A program made the translations under genes and the position numbers. 64,000 nucleotides of DNA from Epithemia pelagica (lineage: Eukaryota; Protista; Bacillariophyta). Position 1 is the stretch's first letter. Each line of letters opens with the position of its first letter. Under the pieces are notes generated by a model that was given only the letters and a program-made list of their open reading frames with translations, did no database searches and was not told where the DNA came from. The stretch is taken from positions 620,001 through 684,000 of the forward strand of contig OX337234.1 in NCBI GenBank assembly GCA_946965045.2, read 5' to 3'. Below are positions 1-48,685 of this stretch, piece by piece.

Positions 1-560
1 TGCTGCACATCCACGTCCGAAACGTGACGAATTATCTCTTTGCCAAAGGCACGGCAAAGAGCCAAACTACATTCGAAGAAATCATCTCCGGCAAAGCATT
101 GAATTGCTTGAGTTGAAGGCACTTGGTTGCTGTTGATGGCTTGAGCACAGCCAGAGACAAAATCAAAATAAGTTTCGACGTGAACAAAAGCGTTTTCGTA
201 GAGTTGTTGCGGAAGAATCTCGGAGTCGTATTTTCGCTTCCTTTCTAGGATTTCAGGCGTCGAGATGTCCAATGAGGATGCCGTCGTTTCGCATACATTC
301 GGAGGAGCCACTACGTAGTTGGGTTCGGGGCGGGTGTTGATATTTTTTTGTCGTTCAAGCTCACGTCCAACTCGTATCCCAGTTTGCATCGCATTTTGTG
401 TGCGGATAAACATTTTCCTAATGATCTCCTTCGGCAAGCCGACAAGGTAGGGTTCTTCTGCAACAAACAAAACGAGCTTTTGATGTCGCTCAGGAGGAAC
501 CTTTTCAGACCAACTGTCATATCCAGTCCTGCCGGCGCACCAGTTTCTCGGCTGGCGACC
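1..560 (-). CDS. Possible coding exon of unknown function, running off the left edge
   Basis: Hand translation gives a stop-free frame of ~186 codons from 560 to the window edge (...LVLFVAEEPYLVGLPKEIIRKMFIRTQ...YENAFVHVETYFDF...), with an ATG at 413. No family recognised. Confidence 0.3.
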
Positions 561-1304
561 TTAAACAAATAGAAACTACGACATACACAACCCCGGTTCA
601 CACTTAACGAAAAACTATCTTTTTCCTTAATCCATGTCCTGTTTCTATCCGGCACTCACAAACTTTTGGTCGCAGAACGGGGGGGGGTCGTTTTCTATTA
701 CAAATACGAAAGCAATAGAAGACTAGAAACTCTCAGGAAACGACGCATTCGTATGTTTCATGAAGATATGTTGGGAACTTGGTCCTGAGTCCTGAGAGAT
801 TTGGTCTTTTATTCCTGGAGATATGAGCGTTCAAAGTTAGACAGTCGGTTTTCAGGTCTTATATTTAACATGTAGGTTGTGTACAGTTTGGATCATAGTT
901 GATGAAATAGTTTCGGGACGGCTGAGGATAGCGCGCGGGCCCGTTCGGTAACAAAAGCTCGTATTGCAACCTCTTTGTGTCACTGTCAGTGAAGGAGACA
1001 TCAGCATTTGAAGATCCGTCACTCGCAGCAGCGACAGAACGGTTCTTTGGGGGTCTATCGTCCATGGTTCTTGTTCTTTGCGCTTCGGCCCGTCAAAATA
1101 CAAAAGAACAGCAACTTCCGGTAATGGACTCAAAACGTACGAAATCTTCCTACTTCTCAGAGTATCGTCACGATAAAACAACCGTTTTCATATTGCGTTA
1201 TCACACACCAATAGCTCTGATATGATCATATTAGATACAGATTCTTTCGATATGAGGCAAGCATCCCGAGTCACGGATGTCGGGGGACATTGTAGATGTC
1301 TTTT

Positions 1305-1749
1305 GTAGAGGTGGCTCCAGCGCTCAGCGCTGGAGAAACTCCAGCAGAGATTTTCTGTTGCGAGAAAAGAGCACTACATTGGTCTTGGTCGCCGTTCTCT
1401 GTGACTGTTGCCCAACATTTGGCGCCTAGCAAGAAAATATCTTGCGTTGCCTGCGACTGCTGCCTCTTCTGAACGGGCATTCAGTATTGCAGGACTGATC
1501 ATATCTGCGAAACAAGCATCACTGGACCCTTCCACCGTTACAGATTTACATTTTTTACGTGAGAATTGGGAACATGTGTTCTCACCATAAGATAGATTCA
1601 CTCTAGGAGTAGCTTCTAGCTAGGCATTTTCATCCTGGTAGCATAGGTAGTCTTTTCTCCAGCTGGAGGCGCTCACCTAGCTCCAGCAGAGACGTCTCCA
1701 GCGCTTACCTAGCTCCAGCAGAGATGAGCTGTTGCTGGAGCCACCTCTA
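1305..1749 (+). mobile_element. Non-autonomous, internally deleted hAT DNA transposon (445 bp)
   Basis: Perfect 16-bp TIRs TAGAGGTGGCTCCAGC (1305-1320) and GCTGGAGCCACCTCTA (1734-1749). Perfect 8-bp TSD GTCTTTTG (1297-1304, 1750-1757). Subterminal CTCCAGCAGAGA repeats. An 8-bp TSD is diagnostic of hAT. Confidence 0.93.
1408..1590 (+). pseudogene. hAT transposase C-terminal dimerisation domain remnant
   Basis: LARKYLALPATAASSERAFSIAGLIISAKQASLDPSTVTDLHFLREN matches the hAT dimerisation consensus. In-frame TGA just upstream (1402-1404); lies inside the TIR element. Confidence 0.88.
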
Positions 1750-1801
1750 GTCTTTTGATGTCGTTTGATGTCTTTTGATGTCGTTTGATGTCGTTTGATG
1801 T
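1750..1801. repeat. Left decamer tandem array (TTTGATGTCG / TTTGATGTCT)n
   Basis: About five 10-bp units; one further unit lies left of the hAT insertion (1295-1304). Confidence 0.9.
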
Positions 1802-1947
1802 TTTTATCGCCAAAGAAGCTCTACTCTCCAGCAGTTGGTATTCTTCAACAGAAAACACACGACTTGTTGACGATAGGCCCATTGCTGAATCAACTGAATG
1901 AGCACCGCTGGATTTTGACTCAAACCATGTTTCCGCACGAGCCCGAA

Positions 1948-2063
1948 ACCAGATCTCAAAACCAGCGGCATGTGGTGCGCCTGCGGCGCCGTTATCCACA
2001 CGCCTATATTCCAATCAGCCTGACACAGACCGTGTCGGGGCCCCCTGAAATTTGACGTTGGGC
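1948..2063 (+). other. attC site, 5'-truncated member of the long family
   Basis: Aligns with the 3' two-thirds of the sites at 3767 and 4384 (CGGCATGTGGTGCGCC...CCTGACACAGAC.GTGTCGGGGCCCCCTGAAA..TGACGTTGGGC). The GCCCAAC arm is missing. Confidence 0.8.
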
Positions 2064-2095
2064 GACATAGTAACCACTGACAAAACGGAGAACTA

Positions 2096-2641
2096 ATGAA
2101 AGACAGAATTTTCTTTGAAAATAATCCTTGGCCGGAAGGTCATACCATTAATGAATTTAAATGGACTGCTCGGCTCAAGGATGGATATGTTTGGTTTGAT
2201 ATGCACCTCGAAACAGACGAATACTATGCTGAACGCGACATTGAAGATGATGAAGAAAATGAACCAGAAAGTGATTGGGAAGCCGCAGGAACCTGGAGCA
2301 ACTACCACGCCTGCAGATTATCATCAAACTTCTGGCATGAAGGCGGGTTCAAGGTTTGCCCAGCCGACGATTATTCTGCAGATTTCCTTGATGGATTAGA
2401 ATTATCCATTGACCCAAATCCCGAAGATTGCGAGGATTTTGAAGATTTAGCCTTTCACATTTATCTACTCGGCCACGATGCAGTTGGTCATCACAAAATA
2501 AAATTTGAAAGAATTGATGATTCCGATAATTTCAAAATCAAATGGGATGGCAAGATTGCATTGGCATATATAGGTGAAGACACCTTTGAACACCCCTTCA
2601 AACTCACTATTACCAGCGCAACAATGCCAAAGGCATTATAG
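2096..2641 (+). CDS. Cassette 1: acidic bacterial hypothetical protein (181 aa)
   Basis: Intronless ORF 33 nt after the core site, GGAG RBS ~7 nt upstream, stop 22 nt before the next attC. Confidence 0.85.
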   Translation: MKDRIFFENNPWPEGHTINEFKWTARLKDGYVWFDMHLETDEYYAERDIEDDEENEPESDWEAAGTWSNYHACRLSSNFWHEGGFKVCPADDYSADFLDGLELSIDPNPEDCEDFEDLAFHIYLLGHDAVGHHKIKFERIDDSDNFKIKWDGKIALAYIGEDTFEHPFKLTITSATMPKAL

Positions 2642-2662
2642 ACACGATATGGCAGATAAAAC

Positions 2663-2834
2663 GCCCAACAATGTGTTCAAGAAAACAGGAGCCGCTAGCG
2701 GTGCTTTTCAACTTATATCTCAATGACTTCAGACCGTCGGTGGTGATGCCGCCTACGGCGCCATTATCTCACCACCTATTCGCGATCAGTCGTCCGGCGA
2801 CTTCATCGCGCCCCTCTTAACTTTGACGTTGGGC
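2663..2834 (+). other. attC site (172 bp)
   Basis: GCCCAAC (2663-2669) ... GTTGGGC (2828-2834). L boxes GTT(C)AAGA / TCTTAAC with one extrahelical base. Internal CGCCTACGGCG hairpin. Confidence 0.85.
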
Positions 2835-3195
2835 GCCATACATTTCCTCGAAAATTACCAATTAAACTCGAATCAAATATAACTGGTTTACTGTGTCCTG
2901 GTCATCTCCTTCAAACGCAGTACGTGCCTTCATGGTCACATCACTATGCCCATGAACTTGATCATCAACCGGCCACTCTTTGCCCACTCCAACATTTAGC
3001 GATTCGGATACATGGTGCACTGGCTAAGGTTGTTACCCAATCGACCATCAACTTTCAATCATTTGGTGATTCGCAAACGCCGTTTCCTGGCTAAAATTGA
3101 TTGCAACCTGTTGGATGCCTCCGAAGGTAAACATATGATTCGTGATTGCCGATTTATGAAAACACTGCCAATGGTTGCATGCGCATTCAATGTGC
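2835..3195. other. Cassette 2: no convincing ORF (non-coding or decayed cassette)
   Basis: About 360 bp between two complete attC sites; only short or start-less frames on either strand. Confidence 0.55.
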
Positions 3196-3254
3196 GCCCA
3201 ACAAGTGACCGAATGGGAGCGCCTAGCGGCGCCCCCTTGGTGTGAACGTTGGGC
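3196..3254 (+). other. attC site, classical 59-base element
   Basis: Exactly 59 bp: GCCCAAC-AAGTG-ACC(G)AA(T)G...GGAGCGCC TAGC GGCGCCCC...CTTGGT-GTGAAC-GTTGGGC, with two extrahelical bases. Confidence 0.92.
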
Positions 3255-3282
3255 ATGCCGGTTATCGAAAATAAGGAATAAA

Positions 3283-3756
3283 ATGAAATTAACTTGGAAC
3301 GAATTGACCATAAACATTGCTGAATTAGATTTCGAAAAATTGTTAAACGATTGGACCTGGTTGTTGAAAAGGGATATGAAACCTCTCTTAGTAAGCGCAT
3401 TAGGTGACGTGTTCCTAGAAGACTTAGATGGGTCGATTCATTGGCTTGACACAAATTTCGGTTCACTTACGTGCATCGCAAAATCAGCAGTTGAATTCAA
3501 AGAAATGATCACTGTACCCGAAAATGTCAGTGAATGGTTTCTTCCACAACTAATTGGTGACCTCATTCAAACACTTACCGCTGGACAATGTTACAGCGCC
3601 GATCACCCACCTGGCCTTGGTGGTGAATTCATACTTTCTAACTTAAAGCCAACCGATATTTATATTCACTACTCAATATTTGGCAAGATATTCAGTCAAA
3701 TTCAGAATCTACCAGTTGGTACAAAGTTAAATGACATTAAGTTCGTCACTGAATAA
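3283..3756 (+). CDS. Cassette 3: DUF1851 / Tdi1-like toxin-immunity family protein (157 aa)
   Basis: AAGGA RBS. Motifs W.WL, S.LGDVFL, I.WLD...G.L..IA, EWFLP.LI, GQCYS..HPP.LGGEF..SNL resemble the DUF1851 family (recognised by eye). Confidence 0.65.
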   Translation: MKLTWNELTINIAELDFEKLLNDWTWLLKRDMKPLLVSALGDVFLEDLDGSIHWLDTNFGSLTCIAKSAVEFKEMITVPENVSEWFLPQLIGDLIQTLTAGQCYSADHPPGLGGEFILSNLKPTDIYIHYSIFGKIFSQIQNLPVGTKLNDIKFVTE

Positions 3757-3766
3757 GACAGATCGT

Positions 3767-3940
3767 GCCCAACAAGCGGTTTACATAAAACGGGAGCCCC
3801 TAGCGATGCTTTGCAACTCTGGTTTCCAGACCTTCAGACCAACGGCATGTGGTGCGCCTACGGCGCCATTATCCACATACCTATTTTCCAATCATCCTGA
3901 CACAGACTGTGTCGGGGCCCCCTGAAACTGAACGTTGGGC
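3767..3940 (+). other. attC site (174 bp)
   Basis: GCCCAAC (3767-3773) ... GTTGGGC (3934-3940). GTTT(A)CA / TGAAAC L boxes, GGGAGCCCC / GGGGCCCCC stem, two internal hairpins. Confidence 0.88.
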
Positions 3941-3958
3941 GATCACAGTAATACTTAA

Positions 3959-4255
3959 ATGACCGAGCTTAAAAAAATATCCACAGTAATTCTCATGACG
4001 ATATTAGGGATTATTTTCGGCATTATCATATATGTCATCTCCGCGTTTACACTAGGCGGAATCATCTCTTCTATTCCGGATAATACTGAAACACCAGGCT
4101 GGGTAGAACTTCCATTCGTCATATTGTTCACATTTGGCATTATTGTTTTGCCTGCGGTTTTTGGTGGATTGGGTTATCTGGTTGGAAGAAAAATGACAAT
4201 AAACGAGAAACTAGAAAACTCTGGGGATGCCATCGCAAGTTTCCCAAAAATGTGA
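3959..4255 (+). CDS. Cassette 4: small two-TM membrane protein (98 aa)
   Basis: ORF 18 nt after the core site, with two long hydrophobic segments. Confidence 0.75.
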   Translation: MTELKKISTVILMTILGIIFGIIIYVISAFTLGGIISSIPDNTETPGWVELPFVILFTFGIIVLPAVFGGLGYLVGRKMTINEKLENSGDAIASFPKM

Positions 4256-4383
4256 TTCGTGTATCTGGCATACTCGCTAAAATCGATTGCAAACCGTAGG
4301 ACATAGACGAAGGTAAACAGACACTTCGAAATTGCGGACAATTGGCAACATCTGGCCGATGGTTCCAAACGCAATCCAGCTAC

Positions 4384-4557
4384 GCCCAACAAGGGGTTTA
4401 CAGAAAACGGGAGCCCCTAGCGATGCTTTGTGACTACGATTTCCCAAGCTGCGAACCACCGGCATGTGGGCCGCCTTCGGCGCCATTATCCACACGCCTA
4501 TCTTCCAATCAGCCTGACACATACTGTGTCGGGGCCCCCTGAAACTGAACGTTGGGC
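4384..4557 (+). other. attC site (174 bp)
   Basis: Same length as, and highly similar to, 3767-3940. GCCCAAC 4384-4390, GTTGGGC 4551-4557. Confidence 0.88.
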
Positions 4558-4563
4558 GTCAAG

Positions 4564-4800
4564 ATGAACGTACTCAAAATATCAACTGCAATGTCGATAT
4601 GCATGCTCGTACTCTTGTCATGCAGAAGCAATACAACAAATAATTACACCTTCAATTACGACGATATACTCAAAAAGGTGAAAAAATACAATTCACAACC
4701 ATACAATGTTAACTTTAAAATATCTACTCTATGCCGTTCAATTGGCCACACAGCCAACACAGATTGGAAACAATTCCCAAATACAATCCCCCCACATGGC
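4564..4800 (+). pseudogene. Cassette 5: truncated bacterial lipoprotein
   Basis: ATG 7 nt after the core site; signal peptide with an LLSC lipobox. The AT-rich frame runs into unrelated GC-richer DNA at ~4700-4800 with no closing attC. Confidence 0.65.
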
Positions 4801-5044
4801 GATTGGCGTTTGCCTCGGCCGCTTCAGTTGCCTCAGTTGCCTCAGCAACGTTTGTTTTGGCCGCCTCAGTTGCCTCAGCAACGCTTGCTTCCGCTTGCTC
4901 AGTCGCCTGTTGAGTTGCATCCTGTGCTGCTTCTTGCTCAGAGGCTGCATCGGCTTGTTTGGGTGCTTCTTCGGCAGCTGTCGCTGCTGCACTTAGTGCT
5001 AAACCCATTAAGAGTGCTGCATGCATATGCTTTATGTAGGCCAT
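4724..5044 (-). CDS. Bacterial secreted Ala/Glu-rich protein, 3' end possibly chimeric
   Basis: Signal peptide (LLMGLALSAAATA) followed by EA-rich repeats; divergent from apt. Confidence 0.55.
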   Translation of the reverse strand: MAYIKHMHAALLMGLALSAAATAAEEAPKQADAASEQEAAQDATQQATEQAEASVAEATEAAKTNVAEATEATEAAEANANRHVGGLYLGIVSNLCWLCGQLNGIE

Positions 5045-5204
5045 TCGATTCTATACCTCTCCTGAATTCACCGGTAGGGCTTCATTTCAGGGCGCGAATC
5101 GTGGTCTGCACTTTGCCAGGGCAAGGCCAATCAGGTAGCCAATGCAGACTTCCAAACGATCAATTCCCCCTTTTCGAACTGCCTGCCCACAGCAGACTTC
5201 CGTC

Positions 5205-5732
5205 ATGAGCACAACCAGCATAGATTTAGCCGCGCACATCCGCGATGTACCCGATTTCCCGAAGCCCGGAATTGTTTTCAAAGACATTTCACCCCTGGTC
5301 GGCAATCCAGAGGCCCTGCAATACGCCATCAAGGCCTTGGCTGCTCGGGTGGAAAACGCTGGCATCACAGCAGTCGCCGGTATCGAAAGTCGAGGATTCT
5401 GGTTTGCACCCGGTGTCGCCTTGGCACTCGGTGCTCGCTTCATCCCAATCCGCAAGCCGGGCAAATTACCATGGAAAGTACATCGCCTCGAATACGACCT
5501 GGAATATGGCTCTGACGCCATCGAAATGCACCAAGACGCAGTGACGTCTGACGATACTGTTTTTGTCATCGATGATGTCTTAGCAACTGGTGGCACCCTT
5601 CGGGCAGCCTGTCAATTGATCCAGCAATGTGGCGCCACTGTGCACGCTGCCGGAGTAGTCGTCGATTTGGCCTTCTTGGGCGGCACACCAACGATTCCGA
5701 GCACAGTACATAGCCTCTTGGAGTACACTTAA
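5205..5732 (+). CDS. apt: Adenine phosphoribosyltransferase, bacterial type (175 aa)
   Basis: IRDVPDFPKPGIVFKDISP, GIESRGF, IRKPGKLP, YDLEYG and PRPP-binding VIDDVLATGGT. The stop overlaps the next ATG (TAATG), as in an operon. Confidence 0.95.
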   Translation: MSTTSIDLAAHIRDVPDFPKPGIVFKDISPLVGNPEALQYAIKALAARVENAGITAVAGIESRGFWFAPGVALALGARFIPIRKPGKLPWKVHRLEYDLEYGSDAIEMHQDAVTSDDTVFVIDDVLATGGTLRAACQLIQQCGATVHAAGVVVDLAFLGGTPTIPSTVHSLLEYT

Positions 5733-5920
5733 TGGCAGCGTTTGAACTTTTTGGCTACAAGGCCTGCGGGACCTGTCGTAAAGCACAAAAATGGTTGGTG
5801 GCACACGGGCAACCCGACGACATGCAACCAATCCGCGAAACACCCCCATCAGTTGAACAACTGCGACGAGCCCTGCATGAGGCCGTGGCAGGCCAGCGCA
5901 AAAAACTCTGCAACTCGGCC
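5732..5920 (+). pseudogene. ArsC/Spx/MgsR-family protein, N-terminal half only
   Basis: GYKACGTCRKAQKWL (CxxC), PPSVEQL, KKLCNS. Similarity stops after ~62 codons, where the DNA switches to an opposite-strand permease. Confidence 0.8.
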
Positions 5921-6200
5921 CAACCAACTGGTGACATTTTCTCGAAAAGCCTGCACCATAATCGTTACACCCAAACTAGCGGCCAAGGCCAAACACAAAG
6001 CAGCCGACGCCGGCCCCAATCGCCCCAAGGCGCGCAAAGGCCACGTCAACCGTTGGGCCAAGGCGTCGCGCCACCACTGGACGAGCGACAGCAATAAGCC
6101 AGAACGTCGCGGCAGGAATCATCGCCGTTAAGCCAAGCACCAAGACCAGGGCGCCGAGCCACCCCCCCAGTAAGCTCGCACTAATTTGCATAATTAACAC
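5918..6200 (-). pseudogene. Internal fragment of an FtsX-like ABC transporter permease, frameshifted
   Basis: One frame gives GALVLVLGLTAMIPAATFWLIAVA; the next frame gives ASAALCLALAASLGVTIMVQAFRENVTSWL (AAL...GV.IMV.SFR..V..WL motif). The shift is near 6040. Confidence 0.6.
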
Positions 6201-6209
6201 GGCCAGCAC

Positions 6210-6280
6210 ACGACATCAAACGACATCAAACAACATCAAACGACATCCCTCACGACATCAAACGACATCCCTCACGACAT
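6210..6280. repeat. Right decamer tandem array (CGACATCAAA)n with CGACATCCCTCA variants
   Basis: The unit is the reverse complement of the left-array unit. Confidence 0.9.
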
Positions 6281-6991
6281 TCCCGTTTGTTCCATACTAG
6301 AGAGATTGGGAAACCATACTCTATGGCTTCATTATACGTATTTTGTATTAATATCGATCCTTTGTCGAAGAAGTTCTTGGTCTTGTACTCTGGGTATTGC
6401 TAGCGGATATGGGAAGTTGCAGAGATGTTGCTGTTTGCTGATAAGTTCAGATTTTTGTGCGTTGCAATGATCGACGATGAGCGACGGACCTACCTACCAG
6501 ATCTTCGGGTAAGTAGCTAGGAGTAGCTACCTAGCTACCTCACACCACCCTTGAGTTTGTCCAATGCAGGCCAGATGTTCCTTGTCCAACATAATATTAT
6601 GAAGATTTAAACCTCCCAAATCCAATAATAAACCACGTAACGAAAGAGCGAACGACATGACTGGCATCTATCGGATAACACCATTGCTCGTGAGGAGTCT
6701 CGGCGACGGTTCTGCATTGCTCCAACTCCTCTAACCGTAAGCCAACAAGTTCCGCAGAGATAGGGCTGGATCCGGCCGCCCGTCTGGACCCATCCTTCTT
6801 GGCTGGCACAACCCTTGCACGAAACAATGCAACCACTACAAAGAGCCACACTTGTCGACGCCCAGACGAGAGTGTACTACTGCGTTCCATCATCCGGTGC
6901 ACAACAAGAGGCTTGGAACCAATCCTGTCCAATTGCTGGGGTTGGAACACCCGATTGGATGGATGGAATATCGGTCCATCCAAACCTATTA

Positions 6992-8230
6992 CTACTTGGA
7001 AAAGCGTCCTGTTTGCAAGAGGGCCAAGTCCTGCAAACTTTCGGGCATGCCTTGGGCTTTCAAAAAATAGGGCATGAACCAGGCGGCCATGGCTTGCAAG
7101 GCGACCAAACTGGTTCCATGATACAAGAGTCGTCGTTGGAACCGCCCCACAGTGTCCATACGACGGGTGTCGTCGTCTGGTTGTTGTTTGTCGTTGTTGG
7201 AACGCTGAAACAAGGGAATCAAGACATGCTTGTCCAAGGCCAAGCCGAGTGCGGGTGCCACGAGCAACACCCACATGTACTCCCAGGCCCAGGTTCCTGC
7301 ACTCACTTGGCCCCACCATGCCACATGCAACAGACAATTGAGACCAAAGGTGGCCATGGTATTGCGCCATTGCAACCAAATGGCGGATGATCTCGTACTA
7401 TTAGTAGGACGACCCCCCAGGGGCTCGTAAATGGCCCATCGCAAATGAAAGCCCGGGGATTTGCTCCATCGGTGCCAAAAATACCGAGGGACCGTCGATG
7501 CCACGGGCAAATTTGAAGGTTCCACCACATAAAACGAAGAACCGGATTGTTGTGGTTGTTGAGGCAGCAAACTGCCCACCACGGCCCAAGTCGGGGCCGT
7601 CATGGCGATATCCGATACCATGCCTTGCGACAATTGAATTTGATAAAAGGCCACAATATTTTGCATCCAACCGGGGAATCGGTCGTACCAACGATAGTCC
7701 AAAATGGCCTGAGCAATCGTTCCCATGAGCACAGCCTGGATCACGCCACGACACGTATAATACAGAATCTTCCAATAATAATTTACTACTGGAACCGTTT
7801 TCTTGTGTGGTGGTGTTGTTCCAGTGGCATGTCGTGGCTGGTGGTGTTCGGGCACGCCTCCTTCAAAGACAATGGTCGCTGGACAATAGCAAAAGAGGAC
7901 TATGCGACCAAAGTTGGTCAAACCCAATTGACTCGCAAACTGCGGCGACAATACGGCATGGACGTACTTGACGGACAGTAGGGCAAAGATCCACCAAATC
8001 AAATTCACGTTAAAGGAATAATACATGCCCAAGGCAGTGCGGAGAGAATCGGCCAGTATATACATGGTCCAAAAGTACCACGTCAAGGCCGCTACTCGAC
8101 GCCAGAGGGCTTGTCGAACCAAACAATAGTAAAACACCCATGGTTGACAGAGCCAAAACAAAACCATCCAACCCCCAATCCGCAAACAATTGCTCCGCAC
8201 CGGTTCTGGCAAATGATCCAATATCACCAT
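6992..8230 (-). CDS. Membrane-bound O-acyltransferase (wax-synthase-like MBOAT)
   Basis: Multiple TM segments. P.AS.VPR.FW.RWS...LR..IYEP.GG and F...CLLH motifs. First ATG at 8230. Confidence 0.75.
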   Translation of the reverse strand: MVILDHLPEPVRSNCLRIGGWMVLFWLCQPWVFYYCLVRQALWRRVAALTWYFWTMYILADSLRTALGMYYSFNVNLIWWIFALLSVKYVHAVLSPQFASQLGLTNFGRIVLFCYCPATIVFEGGVPEHHQPRHATGTTPPHKKTVPVVNYYWKILYYTCRGVIQAVLMGTIAQAILDYRWYDRFPGWMQNIVAFYQIQLSQGMVSDIAMTAPTWAVVGSLLPQQPQQSGSSFYVVEPSNLPVASTVPRYFWHRWSKSPGFHLRWAIYEPLGGRPTNSTRSSAIWLQWRNTMATFGLNCLLHVAWWGQVSAGTWAWEYMWVLLVAPALGLALDKHVLIPLFQRSNNDKQQPDDDTRRMDTVGRFQRRLLYHGTSLVALQAMAAWFMPYFLKAQGMPESLQDLALLQTGRFSK

Positions 8231-8415
8231 CCTTGTGCCTGTTTCTTTGTTTGTTTGTTCCAATCAATCAATGGAGGTGTGACAATCGCTTATTTGTATT
8301 GGTCCGTCGATGGTTTGCAACCCTGCCTCGTGTGTAACTCCTGAACCAGCGAGACGACAAGCTACGTTCTATCAATAGGGAGCTTCTCGACTCTCTCAAG
8401 AGACTTGGGTGTGCC

Positions 8416-8648
8416 TGTTGAGACAAGATAGCACGCCCAAGGAAACACAGGACCAAACCGCGACTCCCAAGAGAGTACAGTGGATGACGAACCCAAAGGA
8501 AGCCGAATGGCAAGTGGTGCAACCACGTAAGAGGTGCAGTCATTCCAAACCGGAGGAGGCGCAACAAAACGCTCATTCTTTTTAAAATAGAAGTAAATTG
8601 GTTTCCTTTTGTTGCCTGTACAGCACGATCGGTTGACTAGTTTCAACA
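8416..8648 (+). repeat. 5' LTR of element 1
   Basis: Direct repeat of 14265-14497. Confidence 0.97.
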
Positions 8649-8662
8649 TATTTTAAAAAGAA
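8649..8662 (+). promoter_or_regulatory. Primer-binding site complementary to the element's own LTR (putative self-priming PBS)
   Basis: TATTTTAAAAAGAA is the reverse complement of TTCTTTTTAAAATA (8576-8589). No TGG tRNA-type PBS. Confidence 0.75.
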
Positions 8663-8696
8663 AATAACACTGTTGTTCACCTCAAAGCCTGAGTGC

Positions 8697-9356
8697 ATGT
8701 CGGATCAAAATCAAAACTCCCTACCTACTGACGAAACGCCTGTACTCGTATTAATCCGTGAGTTCGTGCGGTTGAACCTTCAACACGAAGGGCAAGCCAG
8801 CCGACTCAACGAAGATCACGAAACCAGACTCAGAGCTATTGACCGACAGTATTGGGCCGATACAGCAGAACTGGAACAACGATATCAACGAGCACAAGGT
8901 GAAGAACACGAACGACATCAAAGGGCCCTCCAGGAACATCGTAATCAACGAGAAGCCGATCGCGATAGGGCATATCGGATTGCACAAGAGGCAGAAGAAA
9001 CACAAGCACAGGGCGAAGGGAACCCTCAAGTTGTGGAACTGGAAGCGGTTGAAGAACCTCAAGTTGTGATCGAAGACCCTCGAAATCTCGAGATAGTGAA
9101 CGAACCAAGAGCCATACAAGTGCAAGCCCCAGCCGTTCAGAATCAACAAGGCATTATCTTTCCACCTATTGGAGCACGAGTCCGAGTGGAAACCCCTGTT
9201 CGCCTCGCACGTCATCGACACCCTTTACACAACGCAACAGGAACAGTGCTTAGACACACTGATACCTACACGTGGATCCAAGTCTGGAACCCTATCACCA
9301 GACGCAACGAAGAATTTAAGCGAAAGCCCGTCAATCTCATCATCCTACAAGAATGA
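8697..9356 (+). CDS. Element 1 extra upstream ORF0 (219 aa): coiled coil plus C-terminal KOW/SH3-like domain
   Basis: The stop overlaps the gag ATG (ATGA at 9353-9356). A homologous ORF is present in element 2. Confidence 0.85.
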   Translation: MSDQNQNSLPTDETPVLVLIREFVRLNLQHEGQASRLNEDHETRLRAIDRQYWADTAELEQRYQRAQGEEHERHQRALQEHRNQREADRDRAYRIAQEAEETQAQGEGNPQVVELEAVEEPQVVIEDPRNLEIVNEPRAIQVQAPAVQNQQGIIFPPIGARVRVETPVRLARHRHPLHNATGTVLRHTDTYTWIQVWNPITRRNEEFKRKPVNLIILQE

Positions 9357-12300
9357 GTCAGTCACCAGACAATGTTAATTCCGGTGGTGGCAGAGGAGGA
9401 CGAGGCAATAATCGTGGTCGAGGTCGTGGGGGACGTGGAGGTAGAAACAACAATGGCCAAAGCAAGTTTGAAGGGCAGGAACCCTTGTTGAAGGGATGCG
9501 TGTTTGATTATACACAAGACGCCCAAGCCAAAAAATACATTCGGAACGTGGAACTGCTGATTGGATATATCGGCATCAAGTTCCCGAAGTACAATATGGA
9601 CTTCCAGCGTGCCGTTGAAAATCTATCTTTGCCTACACCTCCTCGTCCACCACGTCCATCCGACACTGCTAGTCCTATTGAAATAAAAGAATGGGAGTTT
9701 CAGTACAAAGCAATTGACGAGAAGCGCGTGGCTACTGAAGGATTCCGCTCATCACTCTATAGTGTTCTTCTTGGTCAGTCAACGGACCTAATGAAGGACA
9801 AGCTCAAGGCCCATAGTTCCTTCCCCTCCATACAAGCTCATCGAGACGGCATCGAGTTGTTGAAGTTGATCAAGGCTACTACATTTACTTTCGATAGCGA
9901 CAGGGTCTACACTGGAATGGCGATGGATAAGATCCGTGCCGATTTCTATGGGATGAAACGACACCCCGGACAGTCTGTCCATAGTTTCTATGAGGCATTT
10001 CGGGCGAAGGTCAAGGTAATCAATGAGGTAGGAATTCTCCTCTTCGATCAGGCATATGTCCAAGAAATTGCCGCAAAGAATGGCCGACCAGGTGCACCGT
10101 CTATGGCTGATAACGAGGAAGCGCAGGACCGCATGATAGCGAATCGATTTATTCGTGCTTGCGGCCAAAAAGACTACGAAGTGCATCTACACAACAACTT
10201 CTTGGATGGGCACATCATCTACCCATCAAATCTCGCTGATGCCCGTGCAATTATCGATGCACGCATGGGGCGTCGTGAGCTCAATAGCAACAACAACAAC
10301 AACCAGAATGAATCAAACAGTGGCTCTCAAGCGCAAGGCTCAGACAATACAGGTCTTGCTTATCCAACTGCTGGCGAAACAGCCAACGAGTCACAGAATA
10401 GTGATACCAACCGAGGTTCGAACTCCGCTGATTGTTGTGTATCTGAAAATGCCTCAGACTCACTTTGTCTTTCTATTGCCACGCTTTCACAGACTAACAT
10501 TCCACCAACATGGGTCCTCCTGGATAACCAGGCCACCATTCACATCTTTTCCAACACATCATTACTCGTCAGTCCACCGAAGCCTAGCCAAGAAACCATG
10601 AGAATCAAGGGGCATGGTGGAACAATTACCACATCACAAACAGCCCAAGTCCGAGATTATGGAGCCGTATGGTTCTATGAGAGCGGCTGGGTCAACATAC
10701 TATCATTCCATCAAGTCAAGCAACAGTACAGCATCTCATACCAAGCCAACAACGATGAATTTCATGTTCGATCCCGCACAGGCGCACTCATTGACATATT
10801 CCGCGCAAGTCCCCAAGGTCTCTATTACTCTGATTGGTCCTCCCGATCTGCTGCGACTGAATTTGGACTGGTCACTACTGTAGCTACAAATAAAGCTAAG
10901 TACACAGCAAATGACGTCGCTAGAGCACAAGGAGTTAGATCATTGCAGATTAAAATAGGTCGACCAAGTGACAGAGAATTCAGCTCAATCCTGGACAAGC
11001 GGTTGCTACCCAATTGTCCTTTCACTAGCAAGGATGTCAAATTAGCCGCAAAGATGCTGGGACCCAACATAGGTACCTTGAAAGGCAAGACGGTTCGAAA
11101 GCGTCCCATGCAAGTTGACGCCTCTCTCATGATCGATGTCCCAATCCCAAAGAAATATCACGATGTTGTCCTTTGCATGGACGTACTTCATGTCAACGGG
11201 ATCCCATTCCTAGCGACGATCTCTCGCTACATCAAGTTCGGGACGATTACCGCATTGAAGGCACTCAATGGACCGACACTTTTCACGGCAATCAAACAAG
11301 TAGTATCGATCTATCGTCGTGGCAACTTGCGCCCTCGAATTCTTCTCGCCGACGGGGCATTTGATAATGAACCCATGAATGAATTTCTCCATGGGATTGG
11401 CATGAGCCTGAACCCGACATCCCGAGATGAACATGTCGGCGACATCGAACGGTACATTCGTACCATAAAGGAAAGAATGAGGTGCATGTATAATACGCTC
11501 CCATTTAAACACATGCCAAAAGTGTTGGTGATTGAAATGGCAAAAGCCGCCGTCTATTGGCTGAATGCCTTCCCAGCTGCCAATGGAATATCGGACGAGC
11601 AGAGCCCAAAGACCCTCGTCACCGGCCAACAACTGGATTATAACCGTCACTGCAAGTATGAGTTTGGACAATATGTCCAGACCCATGAGCCACACGACAA
11701 TTCCATGGAGCCAAGAACCCAAGGAGCACTGGCCCTTCGCCCAACTGGCAACCAACAGGGTGGCCATTATTTCTTGAACTTGTTATCCGGTCGTGTCATC
11801 AATCGGAACCATGCCACGATTGTTCCTATGCCTGATATTGCCCTCCAGCGAGTGCACCAATTGGCTGTTGCCCAGGAGGCATATCCGAATCTTGCTTTTG
11901 GGGATAGGGATAACCGCATCTTGGCTTTGGAATACGATGATTTTGACGAAGGAAATGATGAAGATTATGAGTATGATGTGGACGACGAGGATGATGTATT
12001 GAGGTATGATGAGGATATCGTCGATAATGAGTTGGCGACGGTGAACGAGGACCCGGTGGAGGAGTTGGTCATGGAAGAAGTGGGAAATGAGAACGATTAC
12101 GATCTTAATGATCAAGCGATAGGAGAGGATCAGGGGTTGGATGGTCCCGAGGTAGGAGAGGATCAGGAGTTGGATGGTCCCGAGGATGGTCCCGAGGATG
12201 GAGATAACGTGGGCCTTGGTTTGGATCTTAATGGTCCAGTGGATGGAGTCGTAGAAGGAGGTGGAAACGATGATGGAGTACAGGAAGGAATCGACATTGA

Positions 12301-14434
12301 TGCTCATGAGGAACAACTACATGCTGACTATGTGGAGCAGGCTGTTGCAGATCAAGAACTACTCGAGGCAAATCAAGGAGTGGAGGCAAATCAAGGAGTG
12401 GAACCCGTGCCAAATCAAGGAGTGGGCCCACAACCCGAGCAACCACCCATGCAACAACCCAACATCCATGGTGTTGGCGGTGGAATTGTTGGCGGCGGCG
12501 GTGATGCTGTGGCAGCACCCATTCACCCTAGATATAATCTACGGACGAATCGAGAACGGAACTATGCCCATCGATACAACAATGACATTTATGTTACTGC
12601 TGAAGTGGCGCAAGACGTGTCAACGCCCCAAATGGGGATGAAACAAGGAGTGCGATTGTTTGGTGATGCAGGCGTGGCCGCAGTGAAAAAGGAAGTCCTG
12701 CAGTTGCATGACCGAGAAGTAATGCGAGCCATTATGAAAAGCTCATTGACCAAACAACAAATCCGACAAGCGCTTGGATACTTGATGTTCTTGAAGAGAA
12801 AGAGAACTGGCAAAATTAAAGGACGAGGCTGCGCAGATGGCCGTAAACAACGCGAATACATAAACAAAGAAGATGCATCTTCTCCCACAGTCGCAACAGA
12901 GGCCGTCTTCCTAAGTGCAATCATTGATGCAATGGAACGAAGGGCTGTGGCAGTAGTGGATATTCCAGGGGCCTTTATGCAGGCCATGATGGACCCTGGG
13001 GTGCACATGAGAATCACCGGGCTCATGGTTGAATTGTTGCTTGAAATTGATGAAAAAATGTACCGACCATTCGTTGTGGTCGAGAAAGGCGAACCCGTCA
13101 TCTACGTTGAATTGCTTCGTGCCCTGTACGGCACCCTGCGAGCGGCAAGACTGTTTTGGGAGAAGTTAACTGCCGTCATCAAGGAGTGGGGTTTCATTGT
13201 GAACCCATACGACAGTTGTGTGGCTAACAAAACAATCAATGGGTCGCAATGCACCATCACATGGCACATTGACGACCTCAAAATATCACACAAGGAAGAA
13301 AGCGTGGTCAGCAGCATCATAGAACAAATACAAGCCACATTCGGTCAACAAGGTGAACTTTCGATTTCAAGAGGGAAACGCCATGACTATTTGGGCATGT
13401 ACCTTGACTATAGCGAACCAGGGCAGTTGATTGTTGACATGAGGACCGCCATACAGAGTATCATCGATGATGTACCAAAGGAGTTCAAAGGGGTGGCACA
13501 AACCCCAGCAGCCTCCCATCTTTTCCATCTGCAAGATGGAGCCGAGCAGTTGGATAGCGACCAGGCAGACCAGTTTCACAGTTTCACCATGAGACTGATG
13601 TATATTGCCCAACGTGGACGACCTGACATCCGAGCGGCCGTAGCTTTCCTCAGTACACGAGTGAAAGAACCAACCAAGGATGATTGGCGTAAGTTGTCGC
13701 GTGTGATGAAATACCTCCAAACAACACCCGACTTGCTTCTTCGGTTAAATTGTGATGGGACCGGAATTCTTCGATGGTGGGTGGACGCATCCTATGCCGT
13801 CCATCCTAACATGCGTGGGCATACCGGGGGTGTAATGATGATGGGAAAAGGAGCTGCGATGAGCATCTCATCAAAACAGAAGCTGGTAGCTCGTAGTTCC
13901 ACCGAGAGCGAGCTCATCGGTGTTCATGATGCCATGCCAAATATGCTTTGGTGTCGGCAATTCCTGATCGCACAAGGTTATCAAGTCAAGGAGATGAAAT
14001 TATTCCAAGATAACATGAGTGCAATGTTGTTGGAGAAGAACGGACGAGCCTCCAGCAGCAAACGTACCAAACATATCGACATTCGATATTTCTTCATTAA
14101 AGATCGAGTCGATAACAAGGAACTGACAATCGAACATTGTCCTACGGAAGAAATGATCGCCGATTTCCATACGAAACCGCTTCAGGGTAACTTGTTTTAC
14201 AAGTTCCGTGATCTTATCATGAATATCCCGAGCACTGATATCTATCATTCCTCGCGAAGGAGTGTGTTGAGACAAGATAGCACGCCCAAGGAAACACAGG
14301 ACCAAACCGCGACTCCCAAGAGAGTACAGTGGATGACGAACCCAAAGGAAGCCGAATGGCAAGTGGTGCAACCACGTAAGAGGTGCAGTCATTCCAAACC
14401 GGAGGAGGCGCAACAAAACGCTCATTCTTTTTAA
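9353..14434 (+). CDS. Gag-Pol polyprotein (1693 aa), copia order
   Basis: Protease WVLLDNQATIH; integrase MDVLHVNG...ERYIRTIKER; RT KGRGCADGRKQ / VDIPGAF / LYGTLRAARLFW / HIDDL; RNase H VDASYAVH / SSTESE / TKHIDIRYFF. Confidence 0.97.
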   Translation: MSQSPDNVNSGGGRGGRGNNRGRGRGGRGGRNNNGQSKFEGQEPLLKGCVFDYTQDAQAKKYIRNVELLIGYIGIKFPKYNMDFQRAVENLSLPTPPRPPRPSDTASPIEIKEWEFQYKAIDEKRVATEGFRSSLYSVLLGQSTDLMKDKLKAHSSFPSIQAHRDGIELLKLIKATTFTFDSDRVYTGMAMDKIRADFYGMKRHPGQSVHSFYEAFRAKVKVINEVGILLFDQAYVQEIAAKNGRPGAPSMADNEEAQDRMIANRFIRACGQKDYEVHLHNNFLDGHIIYPSNLADARAIIDARMGRRELNSNNNNNQNESNSGSQAQGSDNTGLAYPTAGETANESQNSDTNRGSNSADCCVSENASDSLCLSIATLSQTNIPPTWVLLDNQATIHIFSNTSLLVSPPKPSQETMRIKGHGGTITTSQTAQVRDYGAVWFYESGWVNILSFHQVKQQYSISYQANNDEFHVRSRTGALIDIFRASPQGLYYSDWSSRSAATEFGLVTTVATNKAKYTANDVARAQGVRSLQIKIGRPSDREFSSILDKRLLPNCPFTSKDVKLAAKMLGPNIGTLKGKTVRKRPMQVDASLMIDVPIPKKYHDVVLCMDVLHVNGIPFLATISRYIKFGTITALKALNGPTLFTAIKQVVSIYRRGNLRPRILLADGAFDNEPMNEFLHGIGMSLNPTSRDEHVGDIERYIRTIKERMRCMYNTLPFKHMPKVLVIEMAKAAVYWLNAFPAANGISDEQSPKTLVTGQQLDYNRHCKYEFGQYVQTHEPHDNSMEPRTQGALALRPTGNQQGGHYFLNLLSGRVINRNHATIVPMPDIALQRVHQLAVAQEAYPNLAFGDRDNRILALEYDDFDEGNDEDYEYDVDDEDDVLRYDEDIVDNELATVNEDPVEELVMEEVGNENDYDLNDQAIGEDQGLDGPEVGEDQELDGPEDGPEDGDNVGLGLDLNGPVDGVVEGGGNDDGVQEGIDIDAHEEQLHADYVEQAVADQELLEANQGVEANQGVEPVPNQGVGPQPEQPPMQQPNIHGVGGGIVGGGGDAVAAPIHPRYNLRTNRERNYAHRYNNDIYVTAEVAQDVSTPQMGMKQGVRLFGDAGVAAVKKEVLQLHDREVMRAIMKSSLTKQQIRQALGYLMFLKRKRTGKIKGRGCADGRKQREYINKEDASSPTVATEAVFLSAIIDAMERRAVAVVDIPGAFMQAMMDPGVHMRITGLMVELLLEIDEKMYRPFVVVEKGEPVIYVELLRALYGTLRAARLFWEKLTAVIKEWGFIVNPYDSCVANKTINGSQCTITWHIDDLKISHKEESVVSSIIEQIQATFGQQGELSISRGKRHDYLGMYLDYSEPGQLIVDMRTAIQSIIDDVPKEFKGVAQTPAASHLFHLQDGAEQLDSDQADQFHSFTMRLMYIAQRGRPDIRAAVAFLSTRVKEPTKDDWRKLSRVMKYLQTTPDLLLRLNCDGTGILRWWVDASYAVHPNMRGHTGGVMMMGKGAAMSISSKQKLVARSSTESELIGVHDAMPNMLWCRQFLIAQGYQVKEMKLFQDNMSAMLLEKNGRASSSKRTKHIDIRYFFIKDRVDNKELTIEHCPTEEMIADFHTKPLQGNLFYKFRDLIMNIPSTDIYHSSRRSVLRQDSTPKETQDQTATPKRVQWMTNPKEAEWQVVQPRKRCSHSKPEEAQQNAHSF

Positions 14435-14497
14435 AATAGAAGTAAATTGGTTTCCTTTTGTTGCCTGTACAGCACGATCGGTTGACTAGTTTCAACA
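14265..14497 (+). repeat. 3' LTR of element 1
   Basis: Direct repeat of 8416-8648; contains the pol stop codon. Confidence 0.97.
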
Positions 14498-47086: not shown

Positions 47087-48685
47087 GTGACTGCGGGAGT
47101 ATTGCGTGGAGAGCGTTCTCGTTTCCAATTGTTTGGTGATACCATGAACACTGCCTCTCGAATGGAGAGTACCGGTGAGGTGAATCGTGTTCAATTGTCC
47201 GAGGAGACAGCCAAGTTACTCAGTGCTGCCGGAAAGCAACATTGGATTACACCGCGCGAAAGCGGTATCGCGGCCAAGGGCAAGGGCATTTTGACCACCT
47301 ACTGGCTCACGAGCAATCAATCCGAAAGTACCCAGGACAATGGCCGCGAAAGCGCTCCCGAATGTGCTCCCATGTCGACCGCTCAGAAACAAGAAGATGA
47401 AATGCACAAGGCCAAGACGACTCGTCTGATCGGCTGGAACGTTGAAGTGTTGCTTGGATTGATTAAGCGTATTGGCAAGAAACGAGCCAGTAAACCTCAT
47501 GGTCCACAGTCCATGACGGATCGGATTGCTTACGAGTCCAAATACAACTCACTCATTTCCACCGCCATTCTCGAAGAAGTTGAGGAAGTTATTGAATTGC
47601 CTCGGGACAAACAGTCGGATGGAGAAAATCGTTCGGTTGCACAGGATCATGAGCAAATGGAAGTACCTCCAGCGGTAGTGGAAGAACTCTCCCAGTTTGT
47701 CTCTTGCATTGCTTCCATGTACAATGAGAATCCCTTCCACAACTTTGAACATGCCTCTCATGTGACCATGTCAGTGGTCAAGTTGCTTTCCCGTATTGTG
47801 GCACCATCCGAAGTGGACTATGAAAAGTCGGCCGCGGGATCCAAGACATTGCACGATCACACATATGGTATTACATCGGACCCATTTACTCGTGTCTTGT
47901 CCGCGCTCATTCACGATGTCGATCACCCCGGAGTGCCCAACGCACAACTCGTCAAGGAAGACTCGGCCTTGGCTTCCACCTACAAGGACAAGAGTGTGGC
48001 CGAACAAAACTCGGTACAGCTTTCCTGGGACCTTCTCATGAGCAGCGAGTTTGTCAACCTTCGTGGAGCCGTCTATTCCTCCGAATCGGAACTCAAACGC
48101 TTCCGTCAGTTGATTGTAAACTCTGTCATGGCCACGGATATTGTCGATAAGGAACTCAAGACTCTTCGAAATGCTCGATGGGAGAAAGCCTTTAGTATGG
48201 ATGACCAGGCGGATACCACAGCAGTCGGTCAAAACATTCAGGAAAATGTGAATCGCAAGGCCACGATTGTGATTGAGCACTTGATCCAAGCCTCGGATGT
48301 GGCCCATACCATGCAACATTGGCACATTTACCGCAAGTGGAATGAACTCTTCTTTATGGAATGCTACCAAGCCTACAAAGCGGGACGGGCTGGGGATGAC
48401 CCGTCCAAGAATTGGTACAAGGGAGAAATTGGATTCTTTGACTTTTACATTATTCCCTTGGCCAAGAAACTAAAAGAATGCGGAGTCTTTGGCGTCTCGA
48501 GTGACGAATACCTCAACTATGCCACCAAGAATCGTAAGGAATGGGAAGAACGGGGACGCGAAATCGTGGCCGAGTTATTGGAAAAGGCCATGGCGGCGGA
48601 AAGCTCGTCCTCCTCCGGTGAAGATGCCTTGCAACCTTCTTCGTCCACCCAAGAGCCAACTGTATCTACCAACGCAACCGCCTAG
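47087..48685 (+). pseudogene. 5'-truncated class III nucleotide cyclase / class I phosphodiesterase fusion gene
   Basis: Begins mid-cyclase (VTAGVLRGERSRFQLFGDTMNTASRMES). Complete PDE motifs follow: FHNFEH, IHDVDH, MATDI, ASDVAH, EIGFFDFYIIPL. No upstream exon found. Confidence 0.8.

Follow-up and report, generated by a model that had tools for sequence, protein, structure and literature searches.

A probable recent insertion of raw bacterial DNA, including an integron cassette array, in the nuclear genome of the diatom Epithemia pelagica

Recent nuclear insertions of bacterial DNA are exemplified by the Wolbachia transfers to arthropods and nematodes and by Agrobacterium cellular T-DNA in plants. 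Reports of bacterial genes in eukaryotic genomes tend to be put down to contamination, and to our knowledge almost every accepted algal case is an old and fully domesticated one. Such old domesticated bacterial genes are well known in diatoms, for example in Seminavis robusta (PMC7335047). A system described in bacteria, alongside their sedentary chromosomal integron arrays, is the cluster of attC sites lacking integron-integrase (CALIN; Cury et al. 2016, PMC4889954). Here we analyze a stretch of 64,000 nt of Epithemia pelagica DNA (GCA_946965045.2, contig OX337234.1, positions 620,001 to 684,000, forward strand), hereafter the window, which carries about 4.26 kb of foreign DNA that includes integron cassettes and their attC recombination sites. 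We hold with high confidence that this is raw bacterial DNA which was genuinely and, in evolutionary terms, recently inserted in the nuclear genome of the diatom, and that it is present on both homologous chromosomes. Our literature search turned up no account of attC sites or integron cassettes in the nucleus of a diatom or of any other eukaryote.

Two assemblers agree on the insert. A second assembly (ENA ERZ21939226), made by a second assembler and reached via the insert proteins, holds the locus on two contigs, ctg1302l (539 kb) and ctg1199l (177 kb), and in both the insert lies between host genes. ctg1302l is 100% identical to positions 1 to 12641 of the window. ctg1199l differs from the window by a 1158-nt element with terminal inverted repeats (TIRs) in the third complete attC site, by deletions of 20 nt (1930-1949) and 6 nt (1976-1981), by a 9-nt in-frame insertion in a Tdi1-like open reading frame (ORF), by a 13-nt tandem duplication after 4769 and by substitutions at 3879, the edge of the transposon site, and at 5547 (T>C); it also lacks a 6.1-kb copia element that the window carries at 8418-14497. 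Reads from four runs (X1 to X4), representing three samples of a single study, were examined as k-mer contigs, with their depth and joints, against the window. The 13-nt duplication and the variant at 5547 are likewise seen in the runs, and a contig of X3 breaks at 3878, at the transposon site. Given that these variants appear in the reads as well, the two versions coexist in the sample as two haplotypes.

The depth of the insert is that of single-copy host DNA, 134-152 vs 128-160 in X1 and 115-131 vs 118-140 in X2. The right junction is bridged, 31 nt past it, by a k-mer contig covering 4529-6239 in X1, X2 and X3. All five insert proteins, sought at an identity of at least 90% among about 15 billion proteins, occur only on ctg1302l and ctg1199l and on no bacterial contig; no bacterial twin was found even in the metagenome assembly of the same sample, and the insert has no plasmid match.

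The insert is made of three pieces that are not adjacent in a bacterium: a cassette array (A), a 1.1-kb fragment with truncated yidC and arsC genes around an intact apt (B) and an orphan fragment (C). The whole insert and piece A comprise the following features.

1950-6209, plus strand: entire foreign (bacterial) insert, about 4.26 kb in three pieces, delimited by reads, attC alignment and homology limits.
1950-2063, plus strand: truncated attC at the left end of the array, 3' ~110 nt only; its alignment with the other long attC sites starts near 1955.
2096-2641, plus strand: cassette 1 ORF of 181 aa, with 143 bacterial homologues of 180-186 aa, at most 65% identical.
2663-2834, plus strand: attC1, long type, ~172 nt, defined by R''/R' boxes and alignment.
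2835-3195, plus strand: body of cassette 2, lacking a convincing ORF.
3196-3254, plus strand: attC2, short canonical type, 59 nt, bottom-strand hairpin of -18.1 kcal/mol (z -3.68).
3283-3756, plus strand: cassette 3 ORF of 157 aa, Tdi1-like immunity protein (Tdi1_C, PF08906, E 5e-8).
3767-3940, plus strand: attC3, long type, interrupted near 3879-3884 by the 1158-nt TIR element in the other haplotype.
3959-4255, plus strand: cassette 4 ORF of 98 aa, small membrane protein, from the ORF list and a domain scan.
4384-4557, plus strand: attC4, long type, 87% identical to attC3.
4564-4795, plus strand: cassette 5 ORF with lipoprotein-type signal peptide, truncated at the joint with piece B.

By the CALIN definition (PMC4889954), positions 1950-4795 are an integron cassette array; its left break falls within an attC and its right break within a cassette ORF. 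An earlier note on this DNA, made from its letters, had counted five attC sites. Five 3' ends with the R' box GTTGGGC are present, at 2057, 2828, 3248, 3934 and 4551, and matching R'' boxes (GCCCAAC) stand at 2663, 3196, 3767 and 4384, giving four complete sites and the truncated leftmost one. A CALIN takes at least two attC sites within a few kb, as is the case here, and each complete site shows inverted RYYYAAC...GTTRRRY cores. In the bottom-strand fold of attC2 the R box is paired, the spacer unpaired and the L stem bulged; the bottom strand of attC3 shows R-box pairing and a bulged L stem around a branched centre (z -3.51). All intact cassette ORFs are co-oriented, and the order ORF then attC recurs in cassettes 1, 3, 4 and the truncated 5. 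The note had also called the cassettes ribosome-binding-site-bearing; GGAG/AAGGA motifs do stand ahead of the first two ORFs, and no such motif precedes the others. The cassette 1 ORF is full length judged by its homologues, and its product has no Pfam or NCBIfam match.

No ORF or Pfam match of integrase type was found within 1950-6209 or next to it; the array is not a complete integron, which comprises intI, attI and Pc. Because the integrase is absent and the host is not a bacterium, the integron parts cannot work, and they are non-functional here. A search for the donor integron by attC sequence, using two patterns, gave 0 matches in 185,579 species genomes and 0 in the JGI metagenomes, and a scan against Rfam returned no families. 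A 65% homologue of the 181-aa protein is surrounded by an ordinary gammaproteobacterial chromosome and not by an integron. A 58% homologue of the Tdi1-like protein (L089) has co-oriented small genes as neighbors and no attC of the type seen in the window.

Two side features of the array are worth recording. The long attC type, at ~172-175 nt, is above the usual size; it has a conserved centre with two internal hairpins, around GGCGCC and GACACAG..TGTGTC, and found no match in any collection searched. Separately, in cassettes 2 and 4 a conserved noncoding block of ~120 nt immediately precedes the attC (3087-3205 vs 4273-4393, 73-77% identity), and may be a small RNA or a regulatory element of the donor cassettes.

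Pieces B and C hold four genes or gene fragments.

4797-5044, minus strand: 5' part of a yidC-like gene, ~82 codons, at the left end of piece B, with a weak match (E 2e-4) to the YidC N-terminus of metagenome contig L002.
5205-5732, plus strand: apt, adenine phosphoribosyltransferase, intact, 175 aa, above NCBIfam equivalog cut-offs (NF002636, 213.6 bits, cut-off 125; TIGR01090 above cut-off).
5732-5922, plus strand: arsC (ArsC/Spx family), truncated, first ~63 codons; full length is 110-122 aa in relatives.
5923-6209, minus strand: piece C, 0.29 kb, 3' end of a membrane-protein-like ORF (5976-6209).

Four bacterial metagenome contigs (L002-L005) were compared with the apt-arsC region, and all have the gene order yidC (minus strand), apt, arsC, with which the position and strand of the yidC-like ORF agree. 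The stop of apt and the start of arsC overlap as TAATG at 5730-5734, as the earlier note had seen, and the identical overlap is kept in L002-L004, the 82% relatives. Homology to L002-L005 spans just 5196 to ~5925; given that it ends there, arsC is cut after ~63 of 110-122 codons. Piece C has no match to these contigs, and its ORF matched only itself among 1.84 billion representative proteins. What the earlier note took for internal decay is truncation at the joints of the fragments and not ORF decay.

The donor probably belonged to the Planctomycetota. The closest Apt proteins outside Epithemia pelagica are 82% and 81% identical and come from uncultured bacteria; named relatives are at most 62% identical and mostly Planctomycetota, and a GTDB scan reached at most 59%, so that there is no close relative with a name. 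In the Apt tree the window protein groups with two metagenome proteins (Shimodaira-Hasegawa-like approximate likelihood ratio test, SH-aLRT, 91), within a set of low support that includes rows labelled Planctomycetes. For the Tdi1-like cassette protein only 37 relatives were found, and those that are named are all Planctomycetota, including Roseimaritima ulvae. The taxonomic placement of apt, a check proposed in the earlier note, came out with Planctomycetota-type bacteria, as it did for one cassette protein. A protein-atlas look-up of the YidC neighbor in the closest relative finds Pseudomonadota, Verrucomicrobiota and Planctomycetota all near. Members of the planctomycete donor group would commonly live on algae, and the insert points to planctomycete epibionts as donors.

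Run X4, a 2024 run of another sample (S3), bears on expression of the insert. Its depth is very uneven over adjacent single-copy host stretches, ranging from 6 to 220, and because the depth is so uneven X4 is probably RNA. Within the insert its coverage is 98.5 at 2015-3354 and 10.6 at 4019-6179. Two features were drawn from it.

2015-3498, minus strand: X4 contig with a splice, putative host antisense transcript over cassettes 1-3, depth 98.5; its strand is taken from the splice sites only.
3357-3470, minus strand: spliceosomal-type intron, 114 nt, from an X4 contig joint 3354->3469, ends CT..AC, cut +2.

Read on the minus strand, the intron has a GTAAGT 5' site, TACTAAG 31 nt before its end, a pyrimidine-rich tract and a CAG 3' site. 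An antisense transcript from which the 114-nt intron has been removed is the probable reading of these data, the library type of X4 being judged from its depth. The intron-like signals probably arose by chance in bacterial DNA.

The insert sits exactly between the spacer and the right arm of a host repeat, whose parts are as follows.

1296-1801, plus strand: left decamer array (GATGTCGTTT type) of 10-bp host repeat units, split by a hAT miniature inverted-repeat transposable element (MITE) at 1306-1749; high copy in reads.
1306-1749, plus strand: non-autonomous hAT MITE, with 16-nt perfect TIRs and an 8-bp target-site duplication, GTCTTTTG.
1802-1949, plus strand: host spacer of the repeat family, 148 nt, depth 10-80x single copy.
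6210-6280, minus strand: right decamer array of 10-bp host repeat units, inverted vs the left array; high copy in reads.

Read depth is 10-80x the single-copy level over 1100 to ~1981 and over 6210-6418, and these sequences therefore belong to a host repeat family. Empty copies of the repeat are present: one contig joins 1945->6218, with 4 shared letters, so that the spacer abuts the right array, and another contig (a loose end) reads AGCCCGAA immediately 5' of 6210. Given the high depth and the joints of the empty copies, 1802-1949 is host spacer and the foreign DNA extends over ~1950-6209. The left edge had been placed at ~1800 in the earlier note, that is, one high-copy host repeat segment (1802-1949) too far to the left. 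Its view that eukaryotic transposable elements and genes flank the insert holds, with the hAT MITE on the left and host genes, the copia element and other eukaryotic genes on the right. Repeat copies without the MITE exist (read joints 1300/1304 -> 1754-1778), and the MITE itself holds a remnant of a hAT dimerisation domain at 1408-1590 (PF05699, E 7e-13). No further copy of the decamer repeat was found within the window or the comparison loci.

How could bacterial DNA have come to lie there? A break may have occurred at the hairpin-prone, foldback-like host repeat, in which two inverted arrays of 10-bp units surround the 148-nt spacer. Fragmented bacterial DNA would have been captured at the break, and end joining with 2-4 nt of microhomology would have linked the pieces to one another and to the chromosome, with no role for the integron. 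Since its arrival the insert has behaved as ordinary diatom DNA: it has gained a host transposon, small indels and a single-nucleotide polymorphism by which the haplotypes differ, and it is apparently transcribed, with one cryptic intron spliced out of an antisense RNA. A bolder proposal goes further, in which the decamer foldback family is a recurrent landing pad or vehicle for foreign DNA and the locus is the first example caught of a eukaryote at the very start of acquiring bacterial genes, with planctomycete DNA already transcribed and a working intron gained by chance. We regard it as speculative and rather unlikely; if true, the diatom could draw on an intact apt and on cassette genes for domestication.

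The arms of Drosophila Foldback elements are made of tandem subrepeats. The insert might be cargo of a mobile foldback-type transposon with the decamer arrays as its arms, captured elsewhere and carried here or onward, since inverted arrays of 10-bp units do bracket it and the repeat family is of high copy. We consider this improbable. The single-copy depth of the insert indicates that the repeat has not multiplied together with a load. Copies of the repeat are normally empty, and the insert lies off-centre, between the spacer and one array. Further, the high-copy sequences outside the arrays (1100-1295 vs 6281-6418) were searched for inverted similarity and none was found, nor were defined termini of the element or a target duplication around the whole structure of repeat and insert.

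An assembly chimera, in which reads of a co-cultured bacterium were mis-joined to a diatom repeat, fares still worse. Very long k-mer contigs indicate that the culture holds other organisms, the junctions are within or next to repeats of high copy number, a setting in which mis-joins occur, and a single study is behind all data. Nevertheless, a mis-join would not explain the agreement of two assemblers, two haplotypes whose differences lie both within the insert and beyond it, a transposon in an attC among them, an insert depth equal to host single-copy depth in two samples, a k-mer contig over the right junction, the lack of a bacterial contig with the insert genes at 90% identity or more, and the splice-like joint in X4. 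By the combined evidence, a mis-join with a co-cultured bacterium is excluded for practical purposes. The earlier note had leaned somewhat towards a real, recent acquisition as well; two of the checks it named, an insert depth at the host single-copy level and a search for an identical segment in a bacterial genome, gave results in keeping with that preference (X1 and X2 for the former, no bacterial contig for the latter), and the right-junction contig and the two haplotype contigs point the same way.

Mosaic, rearranged inserts are typical of artificial transformation, and in the laboratory bacteria can pass DNA to diatoms by conjugation (PMC4411287). Introduction by transformation, conjugation or similar handling is nonetheless hardly credible, as no vector, marker or plasmid similarity was found and the bacterial content is environmental with no close database relative. 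Moreover, the insert stands on both haplotypes and has since received mutations and a transposon insertion that are specific to one haplotype, which needs many generations and either sex or mitotic recombination.

Several observations pull the other way from a genuine, planctomycete-derived and transcribed insertion. All four runs come from the one study with its three samples, the only study in which the sequence occurs, and the second assembly was probably built from the window's own long reads. The left junction (~1950) lies in repeat-rich sequence, and no contig among those listed bridges it. A 230-nt contig with single-copy depth in X1 and X2 fits 6420-6559 and then diverges from the window for 90 letters. 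The end-joining mechanism is deduced from the anatomy of the locus. A 114-bp deletion allele in sample S3 is an alternative to splicing. Concerning the donor, the named relatives of the 181-aa cassette protein are mostly marine Gammaproteobacteria, at most 65% identical, and the call of the phylum leans on how distant relatives (at most 59-62% identity) are named and on a weakly supported tree.

The haplotypes record what has happened to a genuine insertion since it arrived. They differ by 5 substitutions, of which the insert holds two, over the 14.6 kb from ~-6200 to 8417 (window coordinates), and by 1.5% beyond 14498. This block of low divergence around the insert looks like a recent loss of heterozygosity or shared ancestry, and given how few differences it holds, the insertion predates the last common ancestor of both haplotypes there. 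The insert is young, since its bacterial ORFs are full length relative to their homologues. Nothing points to use of the bacterial genes by the diatom, and the default reading is neutral, not-yet-decayed DNA.

The 1158-nt element (L001:7507-8667, in the second haplotype) has 28-nt TIRs (CCCTCCGACTAG.TGTCCGCTTCTTAGC) and no long ORF; 6 nt of target were lost at its insertion, and a target duplication is not obvious. The element is presumably a non-autonomous transposon of the diatom that is still active, and no other copy of it was found in the window or the comparison loci. We considered whether it could be a bacterial insertion sequence that targets attC and was present from the start. This was rejected: the window haplotype has an intact attC consensus, including the 6 nt missing in the other, and the element therefore entered after the bacterial DNA had reached the diatom.

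Three features of the surrounding host DNA are noted in their own right. The copia retrotransposon at 8418-14497, in the window haplotype only, has a 1693-aa ORF with RVT_2 and long terminal repeats of 233 nt; as these are 100% identical, its insertion is very young. Upstream of the window start, an inverted duplication of ~1.35 kb (~93% identical; L086:1-1347 and 6680-8054) flanks a RIO1-like host gene. In the window ORF at 47087-48682 a guanylate/adenylate cyclase domain is fused to a cyclic-nucleotide phosphodiesterase domain, a combination typical of diatoms.

The locus thus offers a rare view of bacterium-to-eukaryote transfer soon after the event, in DNA that is raw yet part of both homologous chromosomes. 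With one locus it becomes possible to test how DNA enters a protist nucleus, how fast it comes to be transcribed, whether cryptic splice sites are used immediately and at what rate such DNA decays or is recruited.

How does it compare with the systems already described? Foldback (FB) transposons share with the host repeat the inverted arrays of 10-bp units around a short spacer and membership of a multi-copy family. Unlike them, the host repeat is without identified termini, target duplications or transposase, and we read it as a fragile landing site and not as a vehicle. The array itself resembles CALINs and sedentary arrays in its 4 complete and 1 partial attC sites within 2.6 kb, in their hairpin-forming bottom strands, in its promoterless, co-oriented, single-ORF cassettes of unknown function and in its three near-identical long attC sites, as found in sedentary arrays. 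In contrast to those bacterial arrays, it lies in a eukaryotic chromosome, is cut at both ends, has no attI or Pc and is unable to recombine, and its long attC sites exceed the usual size and share a structured centre.

The ancient bacterial genes of diatoms (PMC7335047) have in common with the insert the direction of transfer, from bacterium to diatom. Those genes are old and expressed, often carry introns and are found in more than one species, whereas the insert is raw, retains bacterial ribosome-binding sites, attC sites, truncated genes and the overlap of an operon, and has a single strain as its known carrier.

A last comparison is with the Wolbachia and T-DNA insertions. As in those, the DNA is undomesticated and includes noncoding parts, is contiguous with the host, stands at host-level depth, has acquired later host-type mutations and is apparently transcribed at a low level. 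Unlike those, its donor is neither an endosymbiont nor a DNA-injecting bacterium and its host is a unicellular alga, and the diatom insert is a small three-piece mosaic that carries integron recombination sites.

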